A DNA stretch of 63,489 nt, filler included, from Octopus bimaculoides (taxonomy: Eukaryota), in NCBI RefSeq assembly GCF_001194135.2. It is 4 parts of 3 records of this genome, joined end to end, with 100 filler letters (N's around TTAATTAATTAA, not from the genome) between each part and the next. Parts side by side here need not be neighbours in the genome. Positions count along the whole stretch, not along the records: positions 1 to 21,633 come from NC_068985.1; 3 more parts are not named here. One strand, 5' to 3'. Below the pieces are notes generated by a model that saw nothing but the letters and a program-made list of their open reading frames with translations, did no database searches and was not told the origin of the DNA. Below, piece after piece: positions 1 through 21,633 of the stretch (position 1 is the stretch's first letter; the number at the start of each line of letters is the position of its first letter). The translations under genes were made by a program, and so were the position numbers.

Positions 1-554
1 TGTGTGTGTGTGTGTGTGTGTGTGTAAAAGTGGAGAGGGGAACAAGAACAGTCATGCAACAAGAGGAAAATGGGAAAGATGAGGAACACAAAAAACCGAA
101 TGGATCGTTTGTGTGGAAGAGGGAAAAAAATTATGCAGAATTTTGGTTTTCAAGGCCACATGTTTAAAGGCAACTGGTGTATCAGGAGATACATTATAGT
201 TCAGAAGAATTAGATTAACAGATTTTGACATGGCGCAGGTGATACGCAGCATAAGGAAGAGGTCAGACAGACACAAGGGAAGATAAATTGATGGGAAAAT
301 ACGAGCAGGAAAGATAGAGAGAAAGAGAGCTAGAGATCTAATCCTCTTATCTAGTGTGTTGGTATGTTGGTATGTTGGTATATCGTTTTCTGCAATATTC
401 TGTAATTTATCAAAAACGTAACCCGGAGGCATGTTTTGTGTATCGAAACATTCACAAGACAGGTGAAGACAGAAACGTGGGGAGATAAGCGAGAGAGAAT
501 GCATATTGATGAGCAAAAGAAATGAATGGGAAAGCGCGGGCGAGTTACAGAGTG

Positions 555-589
<35 letters not shown>

Positions 590-1570
590 TGTATGTATGC
601 ATGCATGAATGTATGTACGTGTATATATATGAATCTATGTATGTCTGTGTATGCTGTATATGCGTGGTATGTGTATGTATATATATATCATTATTAATAA
701 ATCTCAGGGTAGCAAAAAAATTTAGAAATTCTATTTGCTATTTCTTGGTCTAGCGAGAAGAGAAAAAAACTAGTGAATAGACTATATATTATTCATATAA
801 ATACATACAGTGTACATTTAAACACATGAGAGATGTCCATAATAGGACATCCTATTATGGACATCTCTCATGTGTTTAAATGTACACTGTATGTATTTAT
901 ATATATATATATATAATTATATAGATATAATAATANNNNNNNNNNNNNNNNNNNNNNNNNNNNNNNNNNNNNNNNNNNNNNNNNNNNNNNNNNNNNNNNN
1001 NNNNNNNNNNNNNNNNNNNNNNNNNNNNNNNNNNNNNNNNNNNNNNNNNNNNNNNNNNNNNNNNNNNNNNNNNNNNNNNNNNNNNNNNNNNNNNNNNNNN
1101 NNNNNNNNNNNNNNNNNNNNNNNNNNNNNNNNNNNNNNNNNNNNNNNNNNNNNNNNNNNNNNNNNNNNNNNNNNNNNNNNNNNNNNNNNNNNNNNNNNNN
1201 NNNNNNNNNNNNNNNNNNNNNNNNNNNNNNNNNNNNNNNNNNNNNNNNNNNNNNNNNNNNNNNNNNNNNNNNNNNNNNNNNNNNNNNNNNNNNNNNNNNN
1301 NNNNNNNNNNNNNNNNNNNNNNNNNNNNNNNNNNNNNNNNNNNNNNNNNNNNNNNNNNNNNNNNNNNNNNNNNNNNNNNNNNNNNNNNNNNNNNNNNNNN
1401 NNNNNNNNNNNNNNNNNNNNNNNNNNNNNNNNNNNNNNNNNNNNNNNNNNNNNNNNNNNNNNNNNNNNNNNNNNNNNNNNNNNNNNNNNNNNNNNNNNNN
1501 NNNNNNNNNNNNNNNNNNNATACACACACATATACATACATACATGCATACATACATACCTACATACATA

Positions 1571-1930
1571 CATATAAGGAAACTGGAGAGTTTGAACACA
1601 GAAGGAAATCAATTTATTTATATAATAAGCAATTTCATATCGCCTACGTATGTTTCAATTTTTTACCTTCATTCATATTTTGCAATTAAGATTGCATTAT
1701 GCATTTAAAAGATAAAAGGTCTGTAAGCTATTCTCCATCCAGTAGGATGTGAACGAATGTTTGTCAATTTTTGCCCTGAAGAGATTTTTACCTTTTAAAT
1801 GCATAATGCAATTTCAATTGCAAAATATGAATGAAGGTAAGAAATTGAAAAGTACATAGGTGACATGAAATTGACTATTATATAAAATATTGATTTCTTT
1901 CTGTTTAAACTCACCATTTTCATTATATTA
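1571..1930. repeat. Fold-back repeat with ~145-bp imperfect inverted arms
   Basis: 1571-1716 is approximately the reverse complement of 1785-1930. The right arm plus downstream sequence recurs at ~26740-27070. Confidence 0.75.
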
Positions 1931-3529
1931 AATTATTAAAATTCTGTTCTCCTATATCGAATGGATGAAAACATCTATAATGACTACTGTAACTTCATAA
2001 GTGTTAACTCTAATATTAGCACAAATTAATGAAATCTAAAGTCTATTAATTAATATGGAGCTAAACTTTTGTACGCTTGGATAAAATACATCGCAGCGAA
2101 AGAGCAACCTTTTTCCATTTAAAACTTCATATACACACACACGCGCATACAGAAAGAGAGAGGTGGGGAAGAAAAAAATGAAAAGATATAGACTTGAGCA
2201 ATGGGCATGTTATGAGAATGCGAGGGATGCGAAGAGAGAAAGAGATGTACTATAGAAAAGAGACAGAAAAAAGTGAAAAGTAAAACAATAAGAACAAGCT
2301 CAGTTCAACCAGCATTACAACATCGGCAACAATACCGGAGATGTCGACGTGATGCTGCAAAACAAACAACAATAATAGCAACAGAACTGTTGCATCAACT
2401 TTGATAAAATGTTGTTCTTCAGGAATCAACTGAAAGACAGAAAAAGTGGAAAGGAAGGAGGAAGAAATAAGAAGAGTTGGGAAGGGATTTCTATCTCACC
2501 TGTTTTAGGGTAACTGTGGTTGCTAGTAAAACAATGCCTTACGGGTATATATATATATATCTCCCTTATTATCTTTACCTATTTATTAAGGTGTTTTTTT
2601 TAAAAAGAGGGATTAATATAAAGTGGATGTGAGAAGAGATAACACGCACATACACTTGCCTACGCATATGCAGTGACTTTTACATACTTACGAACTCAAA
2701 CTCAACCACACATAAACATGCACATATACACACACGCACTACTGACACATACCTATATACATAATTATATGCACAAATACACATACATACATATGTATAC
2801 ATGCATGCGTACATACATATATATATACATATATATACATATATATATANNNNNNNNNNNNNNNNNNNNNNNNNNNNNNNNNNNNNNNNNNNNNNNNNNN
2901 NNNNNNNNNNNNNNNNNNNNNNNNNNNNNNNNNNNNNNNNNNNNNNNNNNNNNNNNNNNNNNNNNNNNNNNNNNNNNNNNNNNNNNNNNNNNTATATGTA
3001 CATACATACATGCTTACATACTTTGGGGGTCTTCTCGGTAGATTCCGATAGTTTTTAAATTATGACGACACCGGCGTACAAAGTAAGTAACGCTTTTATA
3101 CGAGTCACACTATCACCTGCTTATGAAGGCGTGGTGTTTTATATTCATATATAATTTTACATGCAAAGGTCCACGAAAAAAATGAGTACATGCCTAAGGA
3201 AATAGTATATGAAGTATATTGGTTTGACATGTTTGTTTTAAATTCATTTTGTGATGATAGTTCAGCTGAGAAATGAGGTCCATACAAACTCCCTCACCCG
3301 CCTCACACCACTTTTTTTTTTACCTTCCTCAAATGTGTTTCATGTATGGAATCCTACCAGAGCAGAAATCCAACCAGTTCAAGGAAGATATCATTGGGGA
3401 AATTGCTGTTCAGATGACAGGTTCTACGAAGTGCTAATACAAATCTACTCAAAAATAGGATAATCTTAATAATGTAGTGCAAAAGAGTAATCCAGTTAGT
3501 CTTTCCTACTCATTAATAAACAAGATCCC

Positions 3530-3960
3530 TAAGCTGATGCAGCCGGTCACTGGGGAGCCGCTCTAGAAACTTCCATAGTCAACCGTCGTCACTGGTGTCT
3601 GTTCTCTGTCATGCGTAGTAGGTTCACTGAGTTGTGATTCGTCCAGTCCTTGATGATGTTGCCAAACCAGGATTTTCTCTATGTGCCTCTCTTTTACCCT
3701 CCCTCAACTGTATTCTGAAGAATTGTTTTGGACAGGGAATTGTGGCAGGATACATGACCGTAACCAAGCAAGCTTTTCATATTTTTACCTGCGCAAGAAT
3801 TACTTCCTCTCTGTCAGCATATTTGTTGAGTTGTTACCTGCTACAATTTTGCTTATCCATAAAATGTATCAGTCATCCTTTTGAGTGAATTCTTTGCCCG
3901 GTTCCTCTCTCTCTGTTCCATAATTTAAACTTTACTGATTTACTACGTTCAAACTCAAGA
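3530..3960 (-). mobile_element. Decayed 3' end of an RTE-type LINE
   Basis: Minus-strand frames with stops and shifts read ...LAQVK..KLAW/YGHVSCHNSLSKTILQNTVEGG*KRGT*RKSWFGNIIKDWT..., typical of the RTE ORF C-terminus. Confidence 0.7.
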
Positions 3961-4520
3961 ATCCCATCAGATATTTTTTCTCTATTTTCTTATGCTAGCC
4001 TATCCATTCTGTTATCATAGATGATGTTATAACCCCTCCTTTTCTAAGTGTCAATATGGTAAACAAAGTATAGCTTATTTCTTTCCCCTTCACATGACCC
4101 ACTCTCTCAGACATTTTGCTGTTGGGATTCTTGCATCTAAAGATGCCAGCTAGAGAAACGATTGCTACTCATAACCTTTTGTTTTAGACAAGGAGTACAC
4201 TCTATTTTCAATGTTTTTTATTTCTATTAAATGTCCAACACCAAATTGATGCGACAAGGTTTACGCCACTACAAATAGAACTGACTGATGTATCACATCG
4301 TACTAAGTTACTTAATGACAATGATCAAACAAGCCAGAATAGAGCTACTCACTCATCTTCGACCTGATCCAACAACCAATACCAGCCAGTGGGGGATTCA
4401 CAATATGGTTTGTATTATTCATCCTTCGGATCGCTGAATACAAAGCATGTCTAACGAGACCTCTGTTCGAGTGATTTTCCTGGGTCACCATCTTACCTTT
4501 GTTCTACAATCTGTGAAAAG

Positions 4521-4660
4521 GTTACCCATTAACAGCTGCTTAGACTTAACAATGTGAAACGAAGTGATTTGCTCATCAACACAATACACAGCCAGTCTGG
4601 GAATCGAAATCATGACATCGCGGTCGTGAGTGTTATTCCCTAACCACTAGGCCACACGCC
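4521..4660 (-). mobile_element. tRNA-derived SINE
   Basis: Head GGCGTGTGGCCTAGTGGTTAGGG...TTTCGATTCCC carries A/B-box-like motifs. Confidence 0.7.
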
Positions 4661-5583
4661 ATTTCGAACAGATTTATAGCTGACCAATACTTTGTTTAGT
4701 TAGTTACTCGATCAGTTTCGCATAATACCTGCAATCTAGTGTACCCGACAATCAAATTTGAGAACAGTTTTTAAACATTTTCCATTAGCCCCAGAGAACC
4801 ACCCCGTCTGCACCACCCTATAATCAGTTTTAATGAAACCTATTGATAATGTAGTTCTATGCTTGCTCTTTTAGTTAACAGATTACCAAGTTTATCAGCA
4901 AAATGGTAATTTTTATGTATGAGTATGTATGTATTAATCTATGTGAGTAATTGTGTTGGAGAAAAATGAAGAGATAAAGGAAATGACAGAGAGAGAGAGA
5001 GAAAAAAAACAGAGAGAAACGGAGATGAAATAAGCGATTCAAGCACTGAGAAACAACATATTAAAGAGCGCTATTTAAAGTGTTACCTTAGACGGAGTTA
5101 TATACATTATTTTCTTATTTTTGCTTGGTCGTTCAACAGCCCTAAATTGCAAAATTCTAAGCCAGGTCATGCACGACAACCTCAAATGCGTGCCAAGATT
5201 AGCGGGGCCAAGATTAGCGGGGCCAAGATTAGCGGGGCCAAGATATTATCTATGTCTGCTCGCGGATACACAGCGAGCAAACGCAAGGGGCGAAAGCATG
5301 GTACAAACTACCAGGCTATACTCACCTGCGCATGGTGAGTAATGTTGTCACATTAAGTGAACTTCACCTTACTAATAATTTATTTACATTGCTCGTTAGG
5401 ACATATTTTCACTGTCATTCTCGATGCTTATGAGTAGTATTGAAAAACCAGATATCTTACTCTAGCTTGTTTCTGTACGACTTGACTTTGTAAATGGGAG
5501 TCATTTTGGTGTTTATTATTGATTATTGATATTAAATTTTAGTACGGGCATTGCTGATAGCCATTGATTTTAACATCTAGAAG

Positions 5584-6150
5584 ATAATTTGTCAGTGTTG
5601 ATCATACTCCAACACAGAGACACACACTAAAATTTATGTCGGATCTAGTGAATCCAAATTTAAAATTCGCCTGAAAAACTACAGATCTTTTTTCAGGGTC
5701 CCGGAGAGACGCAATACAACGACACTCGCAGCATACGGATGGCGCCTAAAAGATAATCATACGCCATTTAATATCAGGTGGAAATTACTAGAAACTTGTG
5801 GACCCTATTGCAATGGAACAATACTATGTAAATTGTGCATGGCAGAAAAATATATAATCCTCATGAACTCACATGAGCCAGGAGGCTACCTGGACTCCAG
5901 GACGGAAGCCGTGGGGAGTTGTCCACATTATCGGGAATTTTTACTTCAAAATTGGAAAACCTAGATATCAAGCAAAGGAAGACAACTCACCCGGTATAAT
6001 TTTTTGCGGGGAATATTTCTTCAACTATCACCGACGTTCTTGTGGTTTTTGAAAAATAAAACACTTTGCAGAGGCAACGGCTATCGTTTAGAGAAACTGA
6101 AGATGTATCTAGTTCACGCTAGATATGAAACCAATCGTTTTTCTCTAAAA
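5584..6150 (+). mobile_element. 5'-truncated Penelope-like retroelement: GIY-YIG endonuclease C-terminus plus 3' tail
   Basis: Frame 5584-5964 reads IICQC*SYSNTETHTKIYVGSSESKFKIRLKNYRSFF...IRWKLLETCGPYCNGTILCKLCMAEKYIILM...LDSRTEAVGSCPHYREFLLQNWKT* (GIY/YIG remnants, CxxC...CxH tail). A hammerhead follows. Confidence 0.8.
6090..6146 (+). ncRNA. Minimal type-I hammerhead ribozyme motif
   Basis: Stem I agagaaa/tttctct; core CTGAAGA; stem II (g)tatctag/ctagata(t); GAAA; short stem III AC..GT; cleavage triplet GTT. Confidence 0.75.
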
Positions 6151-6180
6151 CTGTTACTTTACACATACATATATATATAT

Positions 6181-6245
<65 letters not shown>

Positions 6246-6729
6246 NNNNNNNNNNNNNNNNNNNNNNNNNNNNNNNNNNNNNNNNNNNNNNNNNNNNNNN
6301 NNNNNNNNNNNNNNNNNNNNNNNNNNNNNNNNNNNNNNNNNNNNNNNNNNNNNNNNNNNNNNNNNNNNNNNNNNNNNNNNNNNNNNNNNNNNNNNNNNNN
6401 NNNNNNNNNNNNNNNNNNNNNNNNNNNNNNNNNNNNNNNNNNNNNNNNNNNNNNNNNNNNNNNNNNNNNNNNNNNNNNNNNNNNNNNNNNNNNNNNNNNN
6501 NNNNNNNNNNNNNNNNNNNNNNNNNNNNNNNNNNNNNNNNNNNNNNNNNNNNNNNNNNNNNNNNNNNNNNNNNNNNNNNNNNNNNNNNNNNNNNNNNNNN
6601 NNNNNNNNNNNNNNNNNNNNNNNNNNNNNNNNNNNNNNNNNNNNNNNNNNNNNNNNNNNNNNNNNNNNNNNNNNNNNNNNNNNNNNNNNNNNNNNNNNNN
6701 NNNNNNNNNNNNNNNNNTTTTTAAAAATA

Positions 6730-6769
<40 letters not shown>

Positions 6770-6923
6770 CCTTTATCTTTCGCTTGGTTCAGTCAGGAGA
6801 CTACGAACATTCTGGGCCACTGCCTCGAAGAATCTTAGGCGAATGAATTGACCGCCAAGCAGTGGTGGTGGACAAACACACACACGCACACACACACGCA
6901 CACACACACATATACACACACAC

Positions 6924-6961
<38 letters not shown>

Positions 6962-7016
6962 ATAGAGAGAGAGATACATTTATATATATACATATATACA
7001 CACACACACACACACA

Positions 7017-7054
<38 letters not shown>

Positions 7055-7123
7055 TACATGTATATATATACATATATGCACATACATATATACATATATA
7101 TATATACACATACATACCCATAA

Positions 7124-7178
<55 letters not shown>

Positions 7179-7932
7179 AATATATATATATATACATACA
7201 TGTGTACGTATTTGTATATACATGTGTAGGTATTTATATGTATATTTATGCATACATATTTTTAAAAGCGCCATCTACGATAGACAAAAAGGGTACAGAA
7301 CAATTCCTGCCACGGGAACATATTATCTATTTATATTGCTTTATTGCAGTTCGCAATACTAATTATACCAAAATAGCTCCTATAACATCGTTCTCTTAAA
7401 TTAGCACACACAAACCATTTACTGAATAAACTTATAGCATTGCCTCCCATCAATATCAGTGAACGATAATAGAAAACTTCGTTGCCACTGAACTACTAAA
7501 GGACGACCTTCCTCACAATTCTGTAATACAATTCGCTATAATTTCGAAATATACAACAAATTTCTAATATACAACAAATACATACATACATACATACATA
7601 CATGCATACATACATAGAGATAGTGTGTTAGTTTATTTACATATTTATGCATGCATGCATTTATGCATTTATTTCTGTCACTCACTTTTATCGTTCTACG
7701 CGTGTGTGTATAAATATGCATACACACACACACACACACACACACTCACACAAACACACACATACACACACANNNNNNNNNNATATACATATATATATAT
7801 ACATACATATGTGTGTGTGTGTGTGTGAATGTATATATGTTTATGTGAGTATATATGACAGAGAGATTTACTGTCATTTAACTGACAATAAAAATGTTAC
7901 ATAATGCAGACACAAACAAAATATGTACTTAC

Positions 7933-8027
7933 TGCGCATGTGCAGTTTGGCTTAGAAGACAGAGAAGAATCAAAGCCGACCATCCGAAAATAGTCTTCAT
8001 TCCAGTTTGCAAAAAAGTCACTTCCAT
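7933..8027 (-). CDS. First coding exon (signal peptide) of a second secreted-protein gene
   Basis: ATG at 8027 or 8000: (MEVTFLQTG)MKTIFGWSALILLCLLSQTAHA-Q has a basic N-terminus, hydrophobic core and A-H-A cleavage motif. It ends at a consensus donor CA|gtaagt (phase 2). Downstream exons not identified. Confidence 0.72.
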
Positions 8028-8727
8028 ATTTTTAAAAAGTGGGGGAAATATCCGGGCTTTGAGTCCCAGTGGAGGAAAGACCTCCACTTATTCAATAACA
8101 ATCACAGCACCAAAGACAATAGCAAACAGCTGCATCAACAAGAACAATAACAAGAAGAAGATATAATTGAATGCTGCACACGGATATCTGCAGCCGTAGC
8201 AGAAGGTAAAAATACGAAACTGCGAACAGAGGTGTCACTGTATTGGTGACTGTCTCTGTATGTCTGAAGTAAACGGATTAAGATGAGGGAATAGTTCTAA
8301 AGTGCGGTCATCGGCTTAACTTATACAGTCTGGCAAGAACAATAGGGACCTCTTTGCTTTCAGGTATACCGAGCCGACATTAGCCTCAGGACAAAGTCAC
8401 TCAACACGAAAATACGCCTCTTTTTTTACATTTGTTTCGTTGTATTTTGTTCTTAAAATAATTACTATTTATCATATCAAAATAAGTATTTAAAACCCAT
8501 GTTCCTGTAGTTGTGGTTTTTGTTGCTGCATTTTAAATCCATGTTATTGTTGTTTATAAACACATTTTTACTGTTATTATCGCTGTTGCTACTAATTATT
8601 AATATTGCCGTCGTAGGCATCTTCTTAACCGGTGGGGAGAGGGATCTGTCTGTCTCTCTCTTTTATTCTTTTTTGAAGAGGTTTTTCAGGAGAGAGGGAC
8701 ATGGAACATACATATAAATATGTTTCT

Positions 8728-9110: not shown

Positions 9111-10409
9111 ATTCTAAAACCTCAGTGCCAGACATCTGGTAGTGACATAACAGCTGAATCTCCCTGAATTAGACACTGAAGTTCTAACTATTCTTCGTTG
9201 ATAGTGTTATTCGACTGTTATGTCGCTACCAGACGTCTGCCACTGAGGAGCCCACGCAGGGCGAAATCACGTGATTTGGCAGTTTCCGCGGGTGTAGCAG
9301 ACGTTTCTCGTCTCTCAACAATATTTATACGCGTGCTCTTATGTGCCACGTGTCCATATGAGAAGTTCACTCAAGATAAATAACGCAGTATTGTGTGTTC
9401 TAACACAACGTCCACGTTGGATATAAAGATTGCCTGCCTACAAGATTACAAATTTTGAGGAGAGGGTGTTAGTTGATGACATCAACTCCATTACTTGCAT
9501 ATAGTTTATTTTATAGAACGTCGAAAGGATAAAATGACATAGGTGACCTTTGCAGGTTTTGAACTCCCCCACTACCATCTGAGGATATAACAATTCTCCC
9601 AAATCATTGTCCTCCATGAAGCTAATTACTCCATCCTATTATTAGCACAAGGTCTGAAATTAGTGGGAAGGGCGCTAATCGATTACAGTGATCCCATCCC
9701 CCACACCGCCACATTGTGCTTAACTGGTGTTTAGTTTATCGATCCCCGTGAGGATGAAAATCAAACTCGACCTCAGCAGAATTTGAACTCAGAAAGTAAA
9801 TCCAGATGAAATACCACGAAGAATGTTGTCCAACGCGTTAGAATCCCTGCCCGCGCGCCGCTTTTTGAAAAGAGGTAAGAAGTAATGAATAAAAATGAAT
9901 GAGAAAATATAGAAGGAATGAGGATTTAAAAAGTATATCAATAAATGCATGAAACAGCCAAACCCTAACTGGATAAATAGAGACTAGGTAGAATATAAAC
10001 AGTAATTATTGGTTTTTAATATGAGCAATAATTATTAACAACAAAGAGGGAATTAATCTGGTTAGTTTATTCTACATACCGAAATTCAATTATTCCTCCC
10101 CGGAAGTACGTTGAATTGCCCCGAGCTGAAGCATAAACATTTGTTCTGGTTTCGTGTGAAGTCACTAAACAAGACCGAATGTTGACAGTTTGTTGATACA
10201 TTTGAGTGAAATCTGGATGAAAGTAAATCTGTATATGTCAAGTATTTAGAGAACAACACAGTATGTGGTCTCTGTCTAAAGAAGATCAGTTGAGAAGTTG
10301 GGAGAGACAAGCATTGCATTATAATGTCGCCCTCTCAAGAATAAAAGAAAAAGTCGACTTCGCGGAATTTGAACGCTTTATTTTGTGAACGTAAAGAGAC
10401 ATAGCAAGA

Positions 10410-10755
10410 CTGTAAAATTATTTCTCTCGTTTAATTGAGGTTTTTCCCTCTTTCTCAAAGACTGCCATTACTTTCGAGATACATCAAACATTTTGGCTGT
10501 TTTCGTTACGCTAGTGCCTGCCATACGAGCACCAACAATTTGACCTCTTTGAAAGTCCGATAGATCAGTCATTTTAATGAATTTTAATTACCTTTTTCTG
10601 ATGATGTCTGAAAAGAGACAGCAATTTTAGCAAAACATTAAGCAGCCCCAATAGTAAATCAAAATAAAAAAAATCCAGGTTTTGACGGTTTTATAGATAT
10701 TTCAAAATTATGACGCTATGATGCTAGGTGTTTCCATTATTTTGTCCAGCCCCTG
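10410..10755 (-). mobile_element. Tc1-family DNA transposon 5' fragment
   Basis: TA|CAGGGGCTGGACAAAATAATGGAAACACC terminal repeat. ATG at 10572 gives [45 protein letters not shown] (paired-type HTH of a Tc1 transposase). Confidence 0.82.
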
Positions 10756-11184: not shown

Positions 11185-11360
11185 ACGGCGAGCTGGCAGA
11201 AACGTTAGCAAGCCGGGCGAACGTCTGCTGCTACGTTCTGAGTTCAAATTCCGCCGAAGTTGACTTTGCCTTTCATCCATTCGGGATCAATAAATTAAGT
11301 ACCAGTTAACTACTGTGGTCGTTGTAATCGACTGTCCTCCTCCCCACAAATTCCAGACTA
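11185..11360 (+). mobile_element. SINE family ggcggcgagctggcagaaacgttagc...gagttcaaattccgccgaggtcgactttgcc
   Basis: Related copies at ~9480-9860(-), 11600-11805(-), 14410-14615(+), 19891-20030(+), 56718-56895(+), 62570-62745(-). B-box-like GAGTTCAAAT. Confidence 0.78.
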
Positions 11361-12430
11361 CAGATCCAAGCCATCACTGAAGCTATAAAGATTTGTAACA
11401 CTTTCGAGAAATTTATCATTGAAGTATGTGTAGATATGCAAGTATATGTTTGAGAAGAAATAAATAAAACAAAGCATACAAAAATATCGCGTTGATGTTG
11501 TTGAAATTATAATGAAGAAGCTTTGGGTCTAGGTTAGAAACCGGCTTTTTCTCTATTGCTAAGAAATCTTGAAATAAAACTGAACAATCGTTTCTACTAC
11601 AGACACAAGGCCTGAAATTTGTGGAGAGCGGGTAAGCGATTTCATCGACCCCGGTGTTTCACTGGTGCTTAATTTATCGACCCCGAAGAGGATGAAAGGC
11701 AAATTCGACCTCGGCGGAACTCGAGCTCAGAACGTAGCGGCAGATGAAATACTACTAAGCATTTCGCCCGACGTGCTAACGATTCTGTCAAACTCGCCGC
11801 CTTAATAAAACTGAATATATGACATACATACATACATACATACATACATACATCCATAAAACAAACATACAAATCTGCGCATACACTAACACCAAATACT
11901 GCACACACACACACACACACATATGCACAAATATCTAGATGATGTTGATAAAAGTTCCAATGAAGGAGCCTTGAATCTATGTTAGAGTCCGGCTCTTTCT
12001 CTATGGACAAGAAATACAGAAATGAAACTGATTGATAACATACATACATACNNNNNNNNNNNNNNNNNNNNNNNNNNNNNNNNNNNNNNNNNNNNNNNNN
12101 NNNNNNNNNNNNNNNNNNNNNNNNNNNNNNNNNNNNNNNNNNNNNNNNNNNNNNNNNNNNNNNNNNNNNNNNNNNNNNNNNNNNNNNNNNNNNNNNNNNN
12201 NNNNNNNNNNNNNNNNNNNNNNNNNNNNNNNNNNNNNNNNNNNNNNNNNNNNNNNNNNNNNNNNNNNNNNNNNNNNNNNNNNNNNNNNNNNNNNNNNNNN
12301 NNNNNNNNNNNNNNNNNNNNNNNNNNNNNNNNNNNNNNNNNNNNNNNNNNNNNNNNNNNNNNNNNNNNNNNNNNNNNNNNNNNNNNNNNNNNNNNNNNNN
12401 NNNNNNNNNNNNNNNNNNNNNNNNNNNNNN

Positions 12431-12482
<52 letters not shown>

Positions 12483-12712
12483 TGAATGTCTTCGTGTCTG
12501 TGTTTGTCCTACACCACCACTTGAGAACTAGTGTTGGTGTGTTTACGTCGGCCTAATTTAGAGGTTTGGCAAAAATGACCAACAGAACAAGTAACAGGCT
12601 TAAAAATAAAAAGTACTAGGGTCGATTCACTCAACTCGAATTCTTCAAGGCAGTGCTCCAGTATGGCTGTAGTGTAGGGAGTGAATCACGTAAAAAATAG
12701 ACCGACTGTCAA

Positions 12713-12783
<71 letters not shown>

Positions 12784-13542: not shown

Positions 13543-13548
13543 TTTATT
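13543..13548 (-). promoter_or_regulatory. Probable polyadenylation signal of the EGF-CBM14 gene
   Basis: AATAAA on the minus strand ~200 nt past the stop codon, followed by a GU-rich stretch (gttgttgtcgttgttg). Confidence 0.55.
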
Positions 13549-13750: not shown

Positions 13751-13938
13751 TCAGCACATAGCACCGTTGTCACAACGAGTTAGAGTCTGGTTCCAGCGGG
13801 TACCATCTGGACACGACATAGAGACCAGGCCTCCGTTGGCACATGTGTAGAAACGTCGGCAACTGTCGTCGTCCTCGTAGAATCCTGGCTGACACTGATA
13901 ACATTTAGTCATATTTGGATAGAAACACATCTCTGTCA
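13751..13938 (-). CDS. Terminal exon encoding CBM14 module 3 and the stop codon
   Basis: Acceptor ctctttaaacag|TG, phase 1. (L)TEMCFYPNMTKCYQCQPGFYEDDDSCRRFYTCANGGLVSMSCPDGTRWNQTLTRCDNGAMC* has the full six-Cys CBM14 spacing (x5, x9, x12) plus two extra Cys. Confidence 0.92.
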
Positions 13939-14945
13939 CTGTTTAAAGAGAAGGGAAGTTATATTAATGAAATTCTTATTAGGACTAACCTTATTTTACA
14001 ACTATCAACACACAAATTGTTAAGTCCTTTTGCGAATAAAACTTTATTAAAGCTTAAATAAGGCCTACAATGGAATATAGATATGGTATTTTTTCAGACA
14101 CTACTGCTAGAAAAACCCGACTAATTTGCGTAAAGTCACATACACACTTGAACTTCCGGTGCGTTGACTTCTATTTTGTTTTTCTACCACTGCTATAATG
14201 GCTTCTGCTCCTCTGAGCTGACTGGATTAATGCCCCTTTACGTAGAAATACCCAAGCCACACATCTACTTTTTTATCATAACCTATGTTGTAACCAAACT
14301 CCACGCTACCCGTTCCTTCCTTCCCTCTCGAATTCTCTTCCTTTTTTTTTTGTTTCTCCTACAAGTGTTGAATTATAAAATTGCGACAGTAATATTCATG
14401 GTGTCAATAAGGCGGCGAGCAGGCAGAATTGTTACTGCCCCAGGAAAGATACTTGCCAACATTTCTTTACGCTCTCAGTTCAAATGCTGGTGGGAGTCAT
14501 TTTTACCTTTCATCGTTTCGGGATCGATAAAATAAGTACCAGTTGAACACTGAGGTCAATGTTATCGATTTATCCCTTAACCCGAAATTGCTAGCCTTGT
14601 ACCAAAATTTGAGACCAATATTAACGGCATCAATCTCTCTGGGTTAAGATGGTGTACAAGGGCACGAGCAAGGTTTCTTCCTTTAGATCCAATAAATGAA
14701 AAATAAAAAGGAAAACTTTTAAACAGTGAGGTTTACATACTGTAGGCAAGTCGTATGCCACAACTCACTTCTGTGACTCCTTTTAAAGTTCGGAACTCAA
14801 ATATGAAGCAAATCATGCTTTGAAATGTGGTGAAAAGAACAGCTACAATGACGATAAAAACAACAATAATTCTAGTGATAAGATGGACAATCTACCGATT
14901 CAAGTTATGTAATTATGATTCGGTGATACTAAATATATTACTCAC

Positions 14946-14981
14946 GTGATACTGGCCTAAATTGCGCTGGAGCTGGTAATA
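14946..14981 (-). CDS. 36-nt Pro-rich linker micro-exon between CBM14 modules 2 and 3
   Basis: Strong acceptor tttctctatttcag|TA and donor C|gtgagt, phase 1-1, (V)LPAPAQFRPVS(L). Confidence 0.7.
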
Positions 14982-15177
14982 CTGAAATAGAGAAAGATCA
15001 TACATGAGAAATCAAAATCTTCTTGAGATAGTGGTATGGACGTATAGTTTAGAATCTGGCATATAACATGCATATACGTAAAATACATACTTAAAACATA
15101 CAAATCTGCACGTACATACATACATACATACATACATACATACATACATACATACATGCATACATACATACATACAA

Positions 15178-15285
15178 AAATAGCCTGTTGTTGGTGTTGA
15201 AATTCCAATGAAGGAATCTTGGATCTAGGTTAGAAACCGGTTCTTTCTCTATTGGAAAGAAATCTTGAAATAAACTGAATAATGA
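15178..15285. repeat. Dispersed ~110-bp repeat (ccctgttgatgttgaaattccaatgaagg...ggttagaaaccgg...aagaaatcttgaaataaaactg) associated with (TACA)n
   Basis: Copies at ~11485-11590, 11935-12035, 15580-15650, 61505-61615, 61700-61815. Confidence 0.8.
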
Positions 15286-16287
15286 CATACATACATAATT
15301 ATTGGGGCGTTAAGATATGTAACACACTGCCTAAATGCCAACCTTTAGAAATTAGGCTTCTCAAAACCAGAAAGGAGAAAGCTAATTCGAAAACTACAGG
15401 TCCAATCCATCACTAGAACTGTAAAAATCAGTAAAACTTTCCAGAAGTTTATCATTCAAATATATATGATCATGTTTAGATATGCAACTATGTACATGAG
15501 AAATGATACATAAAACAAAACATAAAAATCTGCACATATACATACATACATACATACATACATACATACATTCAAACAAAAACACCCTGTTGTTGATAGG
15601 TTAGAAAGCGGCTCTTTCCCCATTGGCAAGAAATCTTGAAATAAACAATGACACACATACATACATACATACATACATACATACATACGTACATCCATAC
15701 ATACATACATACATACAAACATACATACATACATACATACATACATACATACATACATACATACATACATAGAAGCAGCTCCAGCGTTATGAAATCCTTG
15801 CTTTCATGAAAATCTTGCCGTAAGGAAGAGTTCCCTTAGGCAAAACATATTTTCTTATTGATTTCCAAGTTCATTTACCTCCATTTAACTTGAAAGTCAG
15901 TGACAGAATTTAATTCGCGTTACGAATAGATAAGATCATACCAAGGAGTAAGAAACCGATATACGGTAAAGTAACAATTGCTGTGTTGCAATATTGGAAT
16001 TACTAACAAATAATGCAAGAATACTATAACAGAATAGTTTTCATATTTTGTATGATATCTGATGTAGTGAAAATGTTGACGACTGAACATACCACTCGTC
16101 TTCATACTACTAATTTTAGTGAGCCTTAACGTGGCATCAGAAAGAGGTTCGAAATAGTGACACTACTGTCTGTATGCTTCTAGGTTATCAACGATTGACA
16201 GTTGTAAAACCTGAATACAGAAAGAGCAGAGATGACATTGATATATTGAAATGTAATTAACGAAAGAAGGTGGAAGTATTGACTTAC

Positions 16288-16467
16288 CTTCGTGGATACA
16301 AGTTGATATCTCTTTGTTCCACACTGTTCCGTCTGGACATTCTCGCAGAACTAGATTATCGTGCACACACTGGTAAAACTTACGAGGGTCTCCTGTATAT
16401 TCGTAGTATTTGTCAGGTAAACATATGACGCATTCTCCAGTGAAGTTGTCAACGCAGAGGTCGTCCA
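16288..16467 (-). CDS. Exon encoding CBM14 module 2
   Basis: Acceptor tttttacccag|TG and donor G|gtaagt, 180 nt, phase 1-1. (V)DDLCVDNFTGECVICLPDKYYEYTGDPRKFYQCVHDNLVLRECPDGTVWNKEISTCIHE. Confidence 0.92.
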
Positions 16468-16660
16468 CTGGGTAAAAATAGATAGATAGATAAATAGCTA
16501 GATAGCTAGATAGCTAGATAGATAGATAGATAGATAGATGTATTGAGAGATATGTGGGTAGAAAGGTGAGTGATAGGGACCTGTTTAAGCATAAAACGTA
16601 ACAGTCGCTCGCAAGCACATATATAACTTGTACTGCAGTTTCGCTGATTGTTTTATATGC

Positions 16661-16918
16661 TTCCATCTGTTCCCCAAGATGAAAATGCAGCTCAAAGATC
16701 GTTGTTTTAACACCATTTTCGAGATCCAGAGCAAATCGCAGAATGTCCTCGACACGCTAACGGAAAACGACTTCCAGGCCGGATTCCAAAAGTGGCAGGA
16801 ATGTTGGGTCCGGTGTATTGTTGCGCAAGGTGACTATTTCGAAAGAGATTATATTAAAACTTAGGTACATAAATTATTTTTATTAAACATACGTAGTCCT
16901 GTTAATACCACTTAGTAC
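16661..16918 (+). mobile_element. Mariner transposase 3' fragment inside an intron of the CBM14 gene
   Basis: FHLFPKMKMQLKDRCFNTIFEIQSKSQNVLDTLTENDFQAGFQKWQECWVRCIVAQGDYFE is a mariner C-terminus. The DNA resembles 44100-44340. Confidence 0.82.
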
Positions 16919-17338
16919 ATGAATACACACAAAAATGTCTATAATGTATAAACACGTAATAAAATATAAGAAATTAAAATAATGTAAATTTACTACAGGA
17001 AATAAATTATGTAACGTTCATTCGTTTCTACAGTTTATTGGTGATAAACACGATAAGAAACAGTTGCTGCTTCAAATCGGGTGCAGACCACGTACTCACT
17101 TCGCCGTGTTTTTACCACTATTATTCAGCACCTGCTATGGTAATAGGTGCTTCTCAATGTGCAAATAACAGAGTCTGCAAATAACAGTCGCTCACATAAA
17201 TAAGTCAATTTGGGAGAAGGAAAATATTTAAGAAACAGAGAGAAATAGAAGAAAAGTTGTAAGCAATGAAAGTGAAAGAACAAACCCTGATCCGTCCTTC
17301 TCTTTGGTAGAGCTTGCAACAAGATATTTAAGACCTAC

Positions 17339-17401
17339 CTGATACAAGGGTCATGTTCACAGGTTCGGTCCCATTCAGCATCTCAAACTCAATCTTCATA
17401 A
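17339..17401 (-). CDS. 63-nt linker exon between CBM14 modules 1 and 2
   Basis: Acceptor tattttccag|TT and donor G|gtaggt, phase 1-1, open frame (I)MKIEFEMLNGTEPVNMTLVS with two N-glycosylation sequons. Joins both neighbours in frame. Confidence 0.75.
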
Positions 17402-17911
17402 CTGGAAAATAAATACAAATTCAACTGTTAAAGAATGAAAAAATTCCTTGATTAACTGAAATATTTTATGGATTATTGTCGTTGTTGTTTCTTTCGCCTA
17501 AGTTTAGCCCAGATGCAACAGACCAATGGTCAAGACATACCATCTGTCCTGACTTTTTCAAACACAGTACATTATCGTTGCTGTTGTTTCGTCTAAGTTT
17601 AGTTAGAAGGAACATGCGGTCAAAGGTGCCTCATCAATGACTACCCTGTCTTATTGCTGTTGTTGTTTCGGCTAAGTTAACTCAAATGGAACGGACTTAT
17701 GATCAAAGACATCTTATCCGCGACCATCCCGTCATCACCTTTTCAAACAATATATAATTGTTGTTGTTTAACGCCAGGTCAGTCTTAATCCAGTTAACTT
17801 ATGATTTATGATTTAAGTCTTTCCGATAATGACAATTCCGATATTTGACAATTATTTGACAATCATAGGGTATCCAGGGCTTCGTCACCGAATACCTCCT
17901 TCTTCTTTTAA

Positions 17912-18416
17912 CCCTTCGTGGGCCGGTGGGATCTCTTAGGACCCCAGCAAATTTTAAAAGTTATGCAACTTTTACAATTTTATTTAAATAATTTTCTATC
18001 TCATGTCTTTTATTGCCAACAGTTTTTGAATATATATATAAATTTTGAGTTTAAAAATTCCAGTCATATTGATGTTATAGCATAAAATATGCTCATTTGG
18101 GTCCAACTGGACACCATTGGCTTTCTGTGAAATTATGTTCTTTTATTTTCAGATATTCTGATGAACTATAAGTCAATTTTCTTCGTATTTGTAATGTTTT
18201 ATTTTATATTTAGGGCTATATGTATAGTTTACAAAACAATAAAAAATGCTGATTTCTTTCACTAAAAGTTTTTTCCAGTCAATAAATTATAGCTTAATTC
18301 CCCTACTGTCACTCCCATCCTTTACGGATAGTGCGGAAATGTGCAAAACTGAAAAGGGAGTCCTCGGGACCCCAATGGCCTCTTGTGTAATTCCAACCCC
18401 GCCGACACACGAAGGG
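17912..18416. mobile_element. piggyBac-type non-autonomous element (MITE)
   Basis: TTAA|CCCTTCGTGGGCCGG ... CCGACACACGAAGGG|TCAA: 13/15 TIR match and TTAA target site (right copy mutated). Confidence 0.8.
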
Positions 18417-19073
18417 TCAAGAAGATCGATTTGAAGGAGATTTCACTGCAGTTTCTTGCAGGCTACGTGACCTCCTGGATCCTCCTTCGCTGGCTCAAAT
18501 GTATACGGCATGCAGTATAGACACAGGAACTTAAATTTACGACATATACCTATCAAACTGATATAGCGGCGTCACTCGATAGACGAGTGACGCCCCTATT
18601 ATAAATAAGTCTAACAAAAAGAAATTATGTAGTAATCCTGATGTCGAAATATATTTGCGGCAAAGGGTTTATTCAAATTACTATTGTACACGTTTCAATT
18701 ACCTTAGCAATTGAAATATGCGTGTGTGCGTGTTTTGTTTGTGTATGTGTGTGCGTGTGCGTGTGAGAGAGTGAGAGCGTTGTATATATGTGCCCATTTA
18801 TGCGTGTATATGAGTGTGTGTATGCGTCTGTGTGTGCAGGTGTGTGTGTTCCTGTGTATGTGTATGTGTTCATGCGTGCGTGTGTGTGTGTGCTCATTAG
18901 TGTGTGTGTGTGTGTGTGTGTGAGTGAGTGAGAGAGTGTTGTATGCATATACCCGTTTGAGTGTGTATATGAGTGCATGTGTGCGTCTGTGTGTGCATGT
19001 GTGCGTTCATGTGTATGTGTGTTCGTGTGTGTGTATGTGCGTGCGCCTGTGTGTGTGTCTGTGTCTGTGTGTT

Positions 19074-19110
<37 letters not shown>

Positions 19111-19596
19111 TAGATCTAAGTATCACAAGATTGCCAAGAGAACAAATGAAAAATCGTGATAATTTTTTAGCCAGAAATCAGCACTTCGATACTCTCACCC
19201 CGAAACATCCACCTCTACCCCGAAAGCATACCAGTATGAAAGACAGATGAGGACAAATCGTTGTTAGTCCTCATCTGATCATCTGGTAGATCAGCCCCTA
19301 TTTAGCTGATCTATGAATAAAAGTATTTCAAACATGACCGTCCCATCGATTTTCTAAATGATTTTTATTAGTTAGAGGTGGAAATTCAGTATTCATGATC
19401 TTTCAATACCGATCCAAACTTGTTATGTCGATATAATCGATATCCGACCAGAATAAATCCTTAGGTCAATATTTACAGTATGCGCTTACCATAAAGTGAA
19501 CTCCGCTTAAATTTTACCAAAGAGCAGGTGACGCTATGGCAGGTGTCTACTGTAAAGGTCATACAATAAGAAGATTGTGGAATATCCAGTACTCAC

Positions 19597-19773
19597 TGTC
19601 ACCACATTTCCATACTCTTTGGTCCCAAATAGTTCCTGGTGGGCACATAAGGAGATACATAAGTCCATTGGTACATTGATAGAATTGGTTGTCAGCTCCT
19701 GGATCCGGTTGATATTCGCCGTGGTTGCATGGCATGCAGTCGGTTAGATTACGGTCTATCATACACCAGTAGG
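19597..19773 (-). CDS. Exon encoding chitin-binding type-2 (CBM14) module 1
   Basis: Acceptor tttatttcag|CC and donor A|gtgagt, 177 nt, phase 1-1. (P)YWCMIDRNLTDCMPCNHGEYQPDPGADNQFYQCTNGLMYLLMCPPGTIWDQRVWKCGD has the FYQC-x9-CPxGTxW-x-C peritrophin-A signature. Confidence 0.92.
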
Positions 19774-20405
19774 CTGAAATAAAGTTACTGAAATTTACAC
19801 ATTATATACAAGAATGGAAACATTTTAATTACCCAATAAATTCAGTATATTTATATAATATAATATGGTTATTATTATATAGCAGCTTAAAGGCGGTGAG
19901 CTGGCAGAATCGTTAACACGCCAGGCGAAATGCTTAACGGCATTTCGTCCATCTTCATGTTCTGAGTTCAAATGCCAACGAGGTCGACTTTGCCTTTCAT
20001 CATTTCGGGGTCGAGGAAGTAAGTACTGTTACAAATATTCTTTTAAAAAACTTTTCATTTAATTTTTCCAAAATTTAATTGTTTTCCATACTTAGAGTTG
20101 AAAAGTCTCAACAGCTGAAACCGATGCAAACACCCTGAAACTAGTCTGTAGATTCCAGACCAGCAAGAGAAAGCGGCTGACCTCCCCTGTTCGAAGGTTA
20201 TAATGGACACAGGTTCGTGTGTCACATAGCTAGATAGAGGCGATGGTCTCTTGGAGCTGATCAACGGCAGCACTCGGACCTATTTTTTGGACTGCCATGT
20301 TAGCTTGGCGATAACTATTAATATATATATATATAATGGAAGAGGAGCGACATAGAGAGAAAATGGATTAATGCAGATTATTATAGAATGAATAGATATC
20401 CTTAC

Positions 20406-20528
20406 GCCAGCAAGTCGATTCATCGAGGCCTAATTGATGTTTAGATGGACAGTTACAGGAATATGATCCATAAGTATTCCGACACATCTTATTGCAACCA
20501 CCGTTGTTCACTTTACATTCATCAACAT
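20406..20528 (-). CDS. Exon encoding a calcium-binding EGF domain (EGF-CBM14x3 gene)
   Basis: Acceptor cttttcag|AT and donor C|gtaag, 123 nt, phase 1-1. Translates (D)[40 protein letters not shown]: DVDEC start, six Cys and the C-x-N-x4-Y-x-C-x-C hydroxylation consensus. Not in the ORF track. Confidence 0.93.
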
Positions 20529-21600
20529 CTGAAAAGCATAAAAGAAATATACATTAATAACAGCATTAACAGCAGCTTTAGAAGTTCAAGTTGAAAAAGT
20601 TTTCTGAAACAGGCCACAAAACAGTCAGTGCCGAGTTCGTTTTCTCTAAGCAACGTACTTATCTAGATCTTTACATTTACACATGTGTATACTTCTACTT
20701 GCTCAATCAAGAGAATGTGGCATTGCTGAGACATCGGTATTGGTGTGTTATTCTTCATTTTTTGCAGGGTTTTTGTTGTTGTTGTTGTTTGTTTGTTTGT
20801 TTTTCTTTTTTGTTTTGACTTGTTTTATTCATTGAACTGCAGATTCGCTGAGGGAACTGCTCTGGGTGGTTTTAGTCGAACAAATCGTCTCCAGGACTCA
20901 TCTTTAATTTTTCCCTTTTATTTTTCAGTCATTAGACCTAAGCCATGCTGAGGCACCGCTTTGAAGACCTTTTAGTCGAATGAATTCGTCTCGGTACTTT
21001 TATTTTATGGTTAAGCCTGGTACTTGTTTTATCGGACTCCTTAGAGGAACTGCTAAGTTACAAGGACGTAAGCGCACCAACACCCCTTGTCAAGCTGTAG
21101 TGAGGGACAAATACAGGCACAAAGGCACGCACACACATACACACTCACGCAAACACACACACACACACACACTCACACACACACACATACATATACACAT
21201 ACACACGTGTAGATAGATAGATAGATAGGTAGGTAGGTGAGTAAGTAGGTAGGTAGGTTGGTAGATATGTGACGGGCTTCTTTCATTTAACGTGTATCAA
21301 AGCCACTCACAAGGATTTGGTTGGCCCGTGGCTATAATAAAAGACACTTGTCCAAAGTGTCATGCAGAGGGACTGAACCCGGAACCATATAGTTAGGAAG
21401 TAAGCTTCTTACCACACAGCCAACGCCTTCGAGTACGTTGATCTTTTTTCACTGATACTTATTCTATCCGTTTCTTTTGTTGAAGCGCAAATTTACGGGA
21501 TGTAAGCAAACAAATATTGGTTGTCAAGCGGTGTGTCGGTTGACAAATACAGACATAATGACAAACACACAGATATGTGTATGTATGTGTGTATATATAT

Positions 21601-21633
<33 letters not shown>

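Follow-up and report, generated by a model that had tools for sequence, protein, structure and literature searches.

A group of six short exons predicted on the minus strand of Octopus bimaculoides DNA raises the question of whether they form one gene, where that gene begins and what its product might do. They lie between positions 13,751 and 20,528 of the stretch analysed here (the window, 63,489 nucleotides (nt) of assembly GCF_001194135.2), in the part that comes from NC_068985.1 (positions 1 to 21,633). The best explanation, which we hold with reasonable confidence, is that they make up the conserved 3' end of a gene that is longer and already annotated in truncated form (UniProt A0A0L8GFF3), encoding a secreted matrix-type protein in which a run of calcium-binding EGF (cbEGF) modules is followed by three CBM14 modules and whose role would be chitin attachment. 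The architecture itself, a cbEGF array plus three CBM14 modules, is likely; that chitin is the ligand has about an even chance of being right and should be taken as a likelihood, not as a fact.

The exons, numbered E1 to E6 in 5' to 3' order and placed by position along the whole stretch, are as follows, together with a motif downstream of the last.

E1: 20406..20528, minus strand, 123 nt, phase 1-1; one cbEGF module
E2: 19597..19773, minus strand, 177 nt, phase 1-1; CBM14/peritrophin-A copy 1, variant form
E3: 17339..17401, minus strand, 63 nt, phase 1-1; linker (I)MKIEFEMLNGTEPVNMTLVS, carrying the sequons NGT and NMT
E4: 16288..16467, minus strand, 180 nt, phase 1-1; CBM14 copy 2, variant form as in E2
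E5: 14946..14981, minus strand, 36 nt, phase 1-1; linker (V)LPAPAQFRPVS
E6: 13751..13938, minus strand, 188 nt including the stop; CBM14 copy 3 and TGA at 13753-13751
AATAAA: 13543..13548, minus strand; likely polyadenylation signal by motif only, 203 nt past the stop

AG precedes all six exons and GT follows five of them (all except the last, E6), with GTAAG or GTGAG as the donor in four exons. Every junction is in phase 1, and the joined 767 nt stay open up to the stop, giving a frame of 255 codons. The encoded order is cbEGF, CBM14, a putatively N-glycosylated linker, CBM14, a short linker, CBM14 and stop; the linkers between the CBM14 modules are 21 residues with glycosylation sequons (E3) and 12 residues, three of them proline (E5). 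Judging from the position of the AATAAA motif, a 3' untranslated region of roughly 220 nt is likely.

Because E2, E4 and E6 are all in phase 1, the frame survives without E3 or E5, and these two micro-exons needed a separate test. They were ranked with our own crude splice-site weight matrix, which is a heuristic only. E3 ranks first of the 63 frame-compatible AG..GT open segments of its intron and E5 first of the 183 frame-compatible AG..GT candidates of its own, and each leads the next candidate by 4-5 bits. Much stronger than this ranking is the comparative evidence for both micro-exons.

That evidence begins with a database search: among 1.84 billion representative proteins, a profile built from the three CBM14 exons matched 1846. 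The names of ten matches were looked up and comprise chitinase-type, chitin-binding, 'balbiani ring protein-like', hypothetical and unnamed proteins. One of the profile matches, a partial protein of the octopod Argonauta hians (GAB1598776.1), reads ...FYQCVHDHLVLQECPERTVWNKNISSCSHE-VLAAPAQSRLVS-LSEMCFYPNLTKCYQ..., which is E4, E5 and E6 spliced together. Its 90% cluster also contains UniRef100_A0A0L8GFF3 (Octopus bimaculoides, 301 residues, 'Chitin-binding type-2 domain-containing protein'), and the joined six-exon peptide is identical to residues 47-301 of this entry. The six exons are therefore already in the public annotation; both their sequence and their splice pattern are public, and the gene is not new. 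A literature search found no paper mentioning the accession A0A0L8GFF3, or O. bimaculoides together with 'chitin-binding type-2'; the protein remains uncharacterised and carries an automatic name only.

The Argonauta locus (L001, BAAFZT010000005.1:23895314-23918082) was compared by blastn with the minus strand of the stretch. Conserved colinear islands occur solely at the six exons, apart from a few fragments of short interspersed elements (SINEs). The exons of the orthologue, in coordinates of this locus, are listed below.

Argonauta E1: 7361-7483, 123 nt
Argonauta E2: 8446-8622, 177 nt, 84% nucleotide identity
Argonauta E3: 9260-9319, 60 nt, AG/GT and NGT kept
Argonauta E4: 9912-10091, 180 nt
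Argonauta E5: 11207-11242, 36 nt, AG/GT kept
Argonauta E6: 12582-12769, 188 nt, stop in the same place

Exon lengths are thus 123, 177, 60, 180, 36 and 188 nt, differing from O. bimaculoides in E3 (60 versus 63 nt), and the AG/GT sites, phase 1 and the position of the stop are all kept. Amino-acid identity over the six exons is 79.5%. By the Nei-Gojobori method the nonsynonymous distance (dN) is 0.119 and the synonymous distance (dS) 1.62, which is saturated, with dN/dS about 0.07. Every cysteine, splice site and stop is kept between the two octopod genera; the coding unit is functional and evolves under purifying selection.

The original prediction had described a hidden six-exon gene with these lengths, splice sites and phase-1 boundaries, joined into a frame of about 255 residues. 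Its exon structure is confirmed at every exon, and the frame, domain order and stop are borne out by the identical public model and by conservation in Argonauta; the word 'hidden' has to be withdrawn in view of the existing annotation. It had also noted that three exons were missing from an open reading frame (ORF) listing, and E1 (whose ORF is 47 residues), E3 and E5 do fall under the 60-residue threshold and would drop out of it. The N-glycosylated linker it proposed agrees with the NGT and NMT sequons of E3; 'Pro-rich' was a generous description of the E5 linker.

Domain identities were assigned by running Pfam one exon at a time, with cutoffs of 27 bits for EGF_CA, 33.4 for FXa_inhibition and 22.1 for CBM_14. 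E1 scores 30.2 bits as EGF_CA (PF07645) and 39.1 as FXa_inhibition, both over cutoff, while CBM_14 (PF01607) reaches 30.5 bits in E2, 39.3 in E4 and 43.6 in E6, each copy passing alone. A scan of the joined peptide, suggested as a check in the original prediction, gives CBM_14 with E=3e-23. E1 agrees with the cbEGF consensus throughout: it carries DVDEC, has six cysteines and fits PROSITE-style EGF_CA and Asx-hydroxylation (C-x-N-x4-Y-x-C-x-C) patterns; its top PDB matches are the cbEGFs of fibrillin-1 and the LDL receptor. These consensus residues suggest that the module would bind Ca2+.

The peritrophin-A consensus is C-x(13-20)-C-x5-C-x9-C-x12-C-x(5-9)-C, and its cysteines pair as C1-C3, C2-C6 and C4-C5 according to the paper on the EHEP structure (bioRxiv 10.1101/2023.06.04.543649). 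Copy 3 (E6) has all six canonical cysteines, spaced C-x10-C-x5-C-x9-C-x12-C-x5-C, although the first spacing, 10, is below the consensus range. The pattern of E2 is C-x8-C-x2-C-x17-C-x9-C-x12-C. In copies 1 and 2 (E2 and E4), C2 and C6 are lost together, which amounts to one whole disulphide (C2-C6), and the two core disulphides common to all solved CBM14 members are retained. All three copies have an extra C-x7/8-C pair directly before C1, and the loop of this extra pair holds an N-x-T sequon in each copy (NLT, NFT and NMT) that is kept in Argonauta. The aromatic motifs FY-x-C and CP-x-GT-x-W are likewise present in every copy. With its canonical six cysteines plus the N-terminal extension, E6 looks like an intermediate form. 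Among the 150 best profile matches, the extended six-cysteine form is restricted to four proteins: the present one, O. sinensis LOC118763360 with 11 copies, a relative in Argonauta with 7, and a single unnamed protein from a metagenome.

E6 was modelled with AlphaFold, at a mean pLDDT (predicted local distance difference test) of 77. Its top 12 Foldseek matches are all solved CBM14 members (Der p 23, the CBM14 of human CHIT1, EHEP, tachycitin, Der f 23, Avr4 proteins and Blo t 12), with probabilities of 0.51-1.00 (at least 0.93 in 11 of the 12) and template-modelling (TM) scores of 0.43-0.61. The model thus predicts the distorted beta-sandwich of the CBM14 fold for E6.

Taken as a mechanism, this architecture would work as follows. 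The protein would have an N-terminal cbEGF run of at least two modules in octopus (the Argonauta orthologue points to five or more, preceded by further sequence) and would end in three peritrophin-A/CBM14 modules with the stop directly after the third. Like those of fibrillin and fibulin, the cbEGF array would be a Ca2+-stiffened rod that engages other proteins of the matrix, and the three CBM14 modules would act as a multivalent (trivalent) chitin anchor. The site of action would be an octopod chitin-protein tissue, such as the sucker lining, beak, radula, or oesophageal or stomach cuticle; octopods have a chitinous sucker infundibulum lining, beak and stomach covering (PMC8688392, PMC7396502).

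Several points weigh against this reading. The CBM14 fold exists without chitin-binding activity, in EHEP and Der p 23 (bioRxiv 10.1101/2023.06.04.543649), so the original statement that CBM14 domains bind chitin as an established fact went too far. Copies 1 and 2 are without the C2-C6 disulphide, as Der p 23 also appears to be by alignment. Support for the exon junctions comes from annotation and conservation. In Argonauta the locus is annotated as two models, which we read as a probable break in annotation.

The first two of these points bear on the ligand. With the same architecture, the CBM14 modules might bind something other than chitin, such as a polyphenol or xenobiotic, a mucin glycan or a protein, in the manner of EHEP or Der p 23. 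This is a possibility to be taken seriously, though we consider it the less probable one: EHEP is itself a mollusc protein with three peritrophin-A domains, it shares with Der p 23 the lack of chitin binding, both are top sequence and structure neighbours of the octopus modules, and the C2-C6 disulphide is missing from copies 1 and 2. Against it stand the full canonical six-cysteine pattern of copy 3, the FY-x-C and CP-x-GT-x-W motifs of all copies, the chitin-associated names carried by most of the family members looked up, and the presence of several chitin-protein tissues in octopods.

Where the gene begins is decided upstream of E1. E1 opens at an acceptor (ttttcag/AT, the slash marking the exon boundary) and has no ATG, so it is not the first exon. 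The 1.1 kilobases (kb) from E1 to the edge of the NC_068985.1 part (20529-21633) consist of SINE-like and microsatellite sequence, and no credible ATG-to-donor exon encoding a signal peptide was found there. UniRef100_A0A0L8GFF3 adds 46 residues, equal to one more cbEGF, coded beyond that edge. This public model starts with MKTCEDVNEC, without a hydrophobic segment; its maximum Kyte-Doolittle mean over 10 residues is 0.22, whereas a real signal peptide reaches 2.52. Since EGF and CBM14 modules are rich in disulphides, a protein built from them must, we infer, be secreted, and because it has no signal peptide the public model is itself 5'-truncated. Its MKTCE start resembles the end of another cbEGF exon lying before it; in Argonauta, cbEGF exons end in ...KTCE or ...KTCA.

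Within the 5 kb that precede E1 in Argonauta there are another four cbEGF exons, each about 120 nt long and in phase 1, at about 2550-2672, 3433-3552, 5345-5467 and 6677-6799 of the locus. Its annotation places them with E1-E3 in a model of 1376 residues that extends past the retrieved locus. Because of the acceptor start, the extra cbEGF of the public model and these upstream exons in Argonauta, the 255 residues are read as the C-terminal tail of a longer multi-cbEGF protein. The 'six-exon gene' of the original prediction accordingly stands as to its exons and fails as to completeness, the gene being cut by the edge of this part of the stretch with neither ATG nor signal peptide at E1, and its single 'EGF head' gives way to a second cbEGF in the annotated model and at least five tandem cbEGF exons in Argonauta. 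Elsewhere in the window, tblastn and a six-frame Pfam scan found no extra EGF or CBM14 exons; the scan covered ORFs of at least 35 residues, low-complexity and N-containing ORFs being excluded, and returned only CBM_14 and EGF families, at these exons.

A small stand-alone secreted protein of about 300-350 residues, with two cbEGFs, three CBM14 modules and only a short signal-peptide exon missing upstream, is an unlikely alternative on the same evidence. It takes its appeal from the sole O. bimaculoides model on record, whose 301 residues comprise exactly two cbEGFs and three CBM14 modules; however, the MKTCE start of that model has the look of an earlier cbEGF exon's tail, and in Argonauta the 1376-residue model contains a further three cbEGF exons ahead of the point where A0A0L8GFF3 starts.

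It is more improbable still that two different transcripts are involved, one with the EGF exons and the other with the final CBM14 exons, which is how Argonauta is annotated. There the 1376-residue model ends at 9483 of the locus, after E3, and a separate model of 104 residues (Ahia01_000154800, GAB1598776.1) runs from mid-E4 to E6. This second model, however, is flagged partial and starts inside E4, and E4 has no preceding start codon or signal peptide. In both species the frame runs on unbroken and every boundary is in phase 1, the micro-exons E3 and E5 are conserved together with their flanking splice sites, and the O. bimaculoides model joins all six exons. Chance ORFs or a decaying pseudogene can be dismissed with near certainty, as no supporting point was found and the Pfam E-value of 3e-23, the dN/dS of 0.07 and the cysteines, splice sites and stop kept with respect to Argonauta refute both.

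The preferred reading, a long secreted cbEGF and CBM14 protein, can be set beside known systems. UniRef100_A0A0L8GFF3 is the same locus with the same splice choices and differs by one extra cbEGF (46 residues) coded past position 21,633. The Argonauta orthologue is colinear over the six exons; it differs by its two-model annotation, its at least five tandem cbEGF exons and its long N-terminal part. Insect CPAP3/Obstructor proteins have a signal peptide followed directly by three canonical six-cysteine domains, and are not known to carry EGF. These arthropod proteins are likewise non-catalytic and bring three CBM14 modules in tandem to a chitin matrix (PMC3504105). In contrast to them, the octopus protein has cbEGF before its CBM14 modules, two copies without C2/C6 and an extra N-terminal cysteine pair in all copies; its C-terminus works like that of a CPAP3, yet the protein does not belong to that family.

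Within molluscs, EHEP of Aplysia kurodai (PDB 8IN3/8IN6), with three peritrophin-A domains, is a top neighbour in sequence and structure. Unlike the octopus protein, it is about 25 kDa in size, has no EGF, and binds phlorotannin in digestive fluid rather than chitin. The Pif, BMSP and LamG3 Pif-like shell-matrix and eggcase proteins also combine ChtBD2/CBM14 domains with protein-interaction domains, and Argonauta LamG3 Pif-like has three in a row. Their partners are VWA and/or laminin-G domains, whereas the octopus protein uses cbEGF instead. In the window, the laminin-G domain that would mark a Pif/BMSP protein does not follow CBM14 copy 3, where the stop comes directly, so the octopus protein is not of the Pif/BMSP type; a VWA domain might lie far upstream of position 21,633.

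The nearest described analogue by architecture is Oik19 of Oikopleura, in which a fibrillin-like EGF array is combined with ChtBD2 in a secreted polysaccharide-based matrix (PMC3390340). The likeness, as far as shown, is one of shared modules. Oik19 comes from a urochordate, carries a single ChtBD2 together with C-type lectin domains, and belongs to a cellulose matrix. The arrays of fibulin, fibrillin, MEGF6, SCUBE and nephronectin have the same NGGC-type cbEGF as the octopus EGF exons, and no CBM14 occurs in the cbEGF-array matches whose Pfam domains were listed. Among the matches listed, the combination of cbEGF and CBM14 is found in no other protein. A word-indexed protein search with the 255-residue peptide, the 301-residue model and the Argonauta EGF plus E2 gave either no match or only generic cbEGF matches in proteins shorter than 500 residues; no cephalopod orthologue was among them, and it missed the identical UniRef entry that the exhaustive search of representative proteins had recovered.

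The variant CBM14 form of E2 and E4 recurs in two giant proteins, O. sinensis LOC118763360 (XP_036358737.1, 1350 residues) and Argonauta Ahia01_000154400 (1315 residues), with 11 and 7 copies of the extended variant, respectively. Unlike the octopus protein, both have a long Gly-rich repeat region and no EGF.

A second gene lies 5.7 kb downstream of the six-exon gene on the same strand. Its first coding exon is at 7933-8027 on the minus strand, with the ATG at 8027, a signal peptide MEVTFLQTGMKTIFGWSALILLCLLSQTAHA(Q) and the donor CA/GTAAGT. The product of this exon is 83-89% identical to the signal peptide of LOC118763360 (XP_036358737.1), a protein of 1350 residues with about 11 extended CBM14-like repeats, a Gly-rich region and at least 50 predicted isoforms. 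No later exon of this gene was found in 1-7932. Ahia01_000154400 was rejected as a syntenic neighbour in Argonauta, being about 120 kb away on the opposite strand; proximity on the same chromosome alone is claimed.

A wider reading, which we consider doubtful, would see here an octopod-specific neighbourhood of chitin-matrix genes, with the giant Gly-rich neighbour as one member. The long cbEGF/CBM14 protein would then be an adaptor that, in the lining of the suckers or the cuticle of the gut, ties a Ca-dependent fibrillin/fibulin-like protein network to chitin. The extended, N-glycosylated module lacking C2/C6 would have arisen within cephalopods from a canonical CBM14 of the kind still seen in copy 3.

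The remainder of the window consists of microsatellites, SINE-like copies, assembly gaps and a Tc1-like remnant. The SINE-like copies, probably derived from tRNA, lie in the introns and flanks of the gene, and one fills most of the sequence from E1 to position 21,633. An Rfam search of the window gave no match at gathering score, tRNA-type included. A short peptide on the minus strand at 10471-10572, followed by stops, gave no Pfam match at E<=0.01 when scanned as part of a long concatenate; it is similar to the helix-turn-helix at the N-terminus of Tc1/mariner transposases, and we take it to be a probable transposon remnant. An inverted repeat with 101-nt arms, 89% complementary and 68 nt apart, may be a hairpin of the miniature inverted-repeat transposable element type. 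Supposed inverted repeats of 530 nt (877-1408/6246-6775) were rejected as an artefact of N runs. The positions of the repeats and gaps are given below.

SINE-like copies, 62-85% identity: 11235-11352, 14472-14589, 19959-20026 and 21250-21420
Inverted SINE-like pairs: 11682-11790/19902-20010 and 12431-12611/21003-21183
Inverted repeat, possible hairpin: 1617-1717/1786-1886
N runs (assembly gaps), five: 936-1519, 2850-2992, 6246-6717, 7773-7782 and 12052-12430

The finding serves mainly as quality control: a reading of raw sequence recovered exactly a gene model more than seven years old, with its 36- and 63-nt micro-exons included. The gene call is correct and detailed, and the gene is an ordinary, uncharacterised matrix-protein gene that will not surprise a specialist. 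The matrix proteins of octopod chitin composites (sucker lining, beak, radula and foregut cuticle) are little known outside the squid beak. For the study of cephalopod chitin matrices the locus offers some guides: the public model lacks its 5' end, a variant restricted to the lineage accounts for two of the three CBM14 copies, and a giant paralogue-bearing gene adjoins it. The protein itself is a candidate link, as yet uncharacterised, between a cbEGF network and chitin in octopods.

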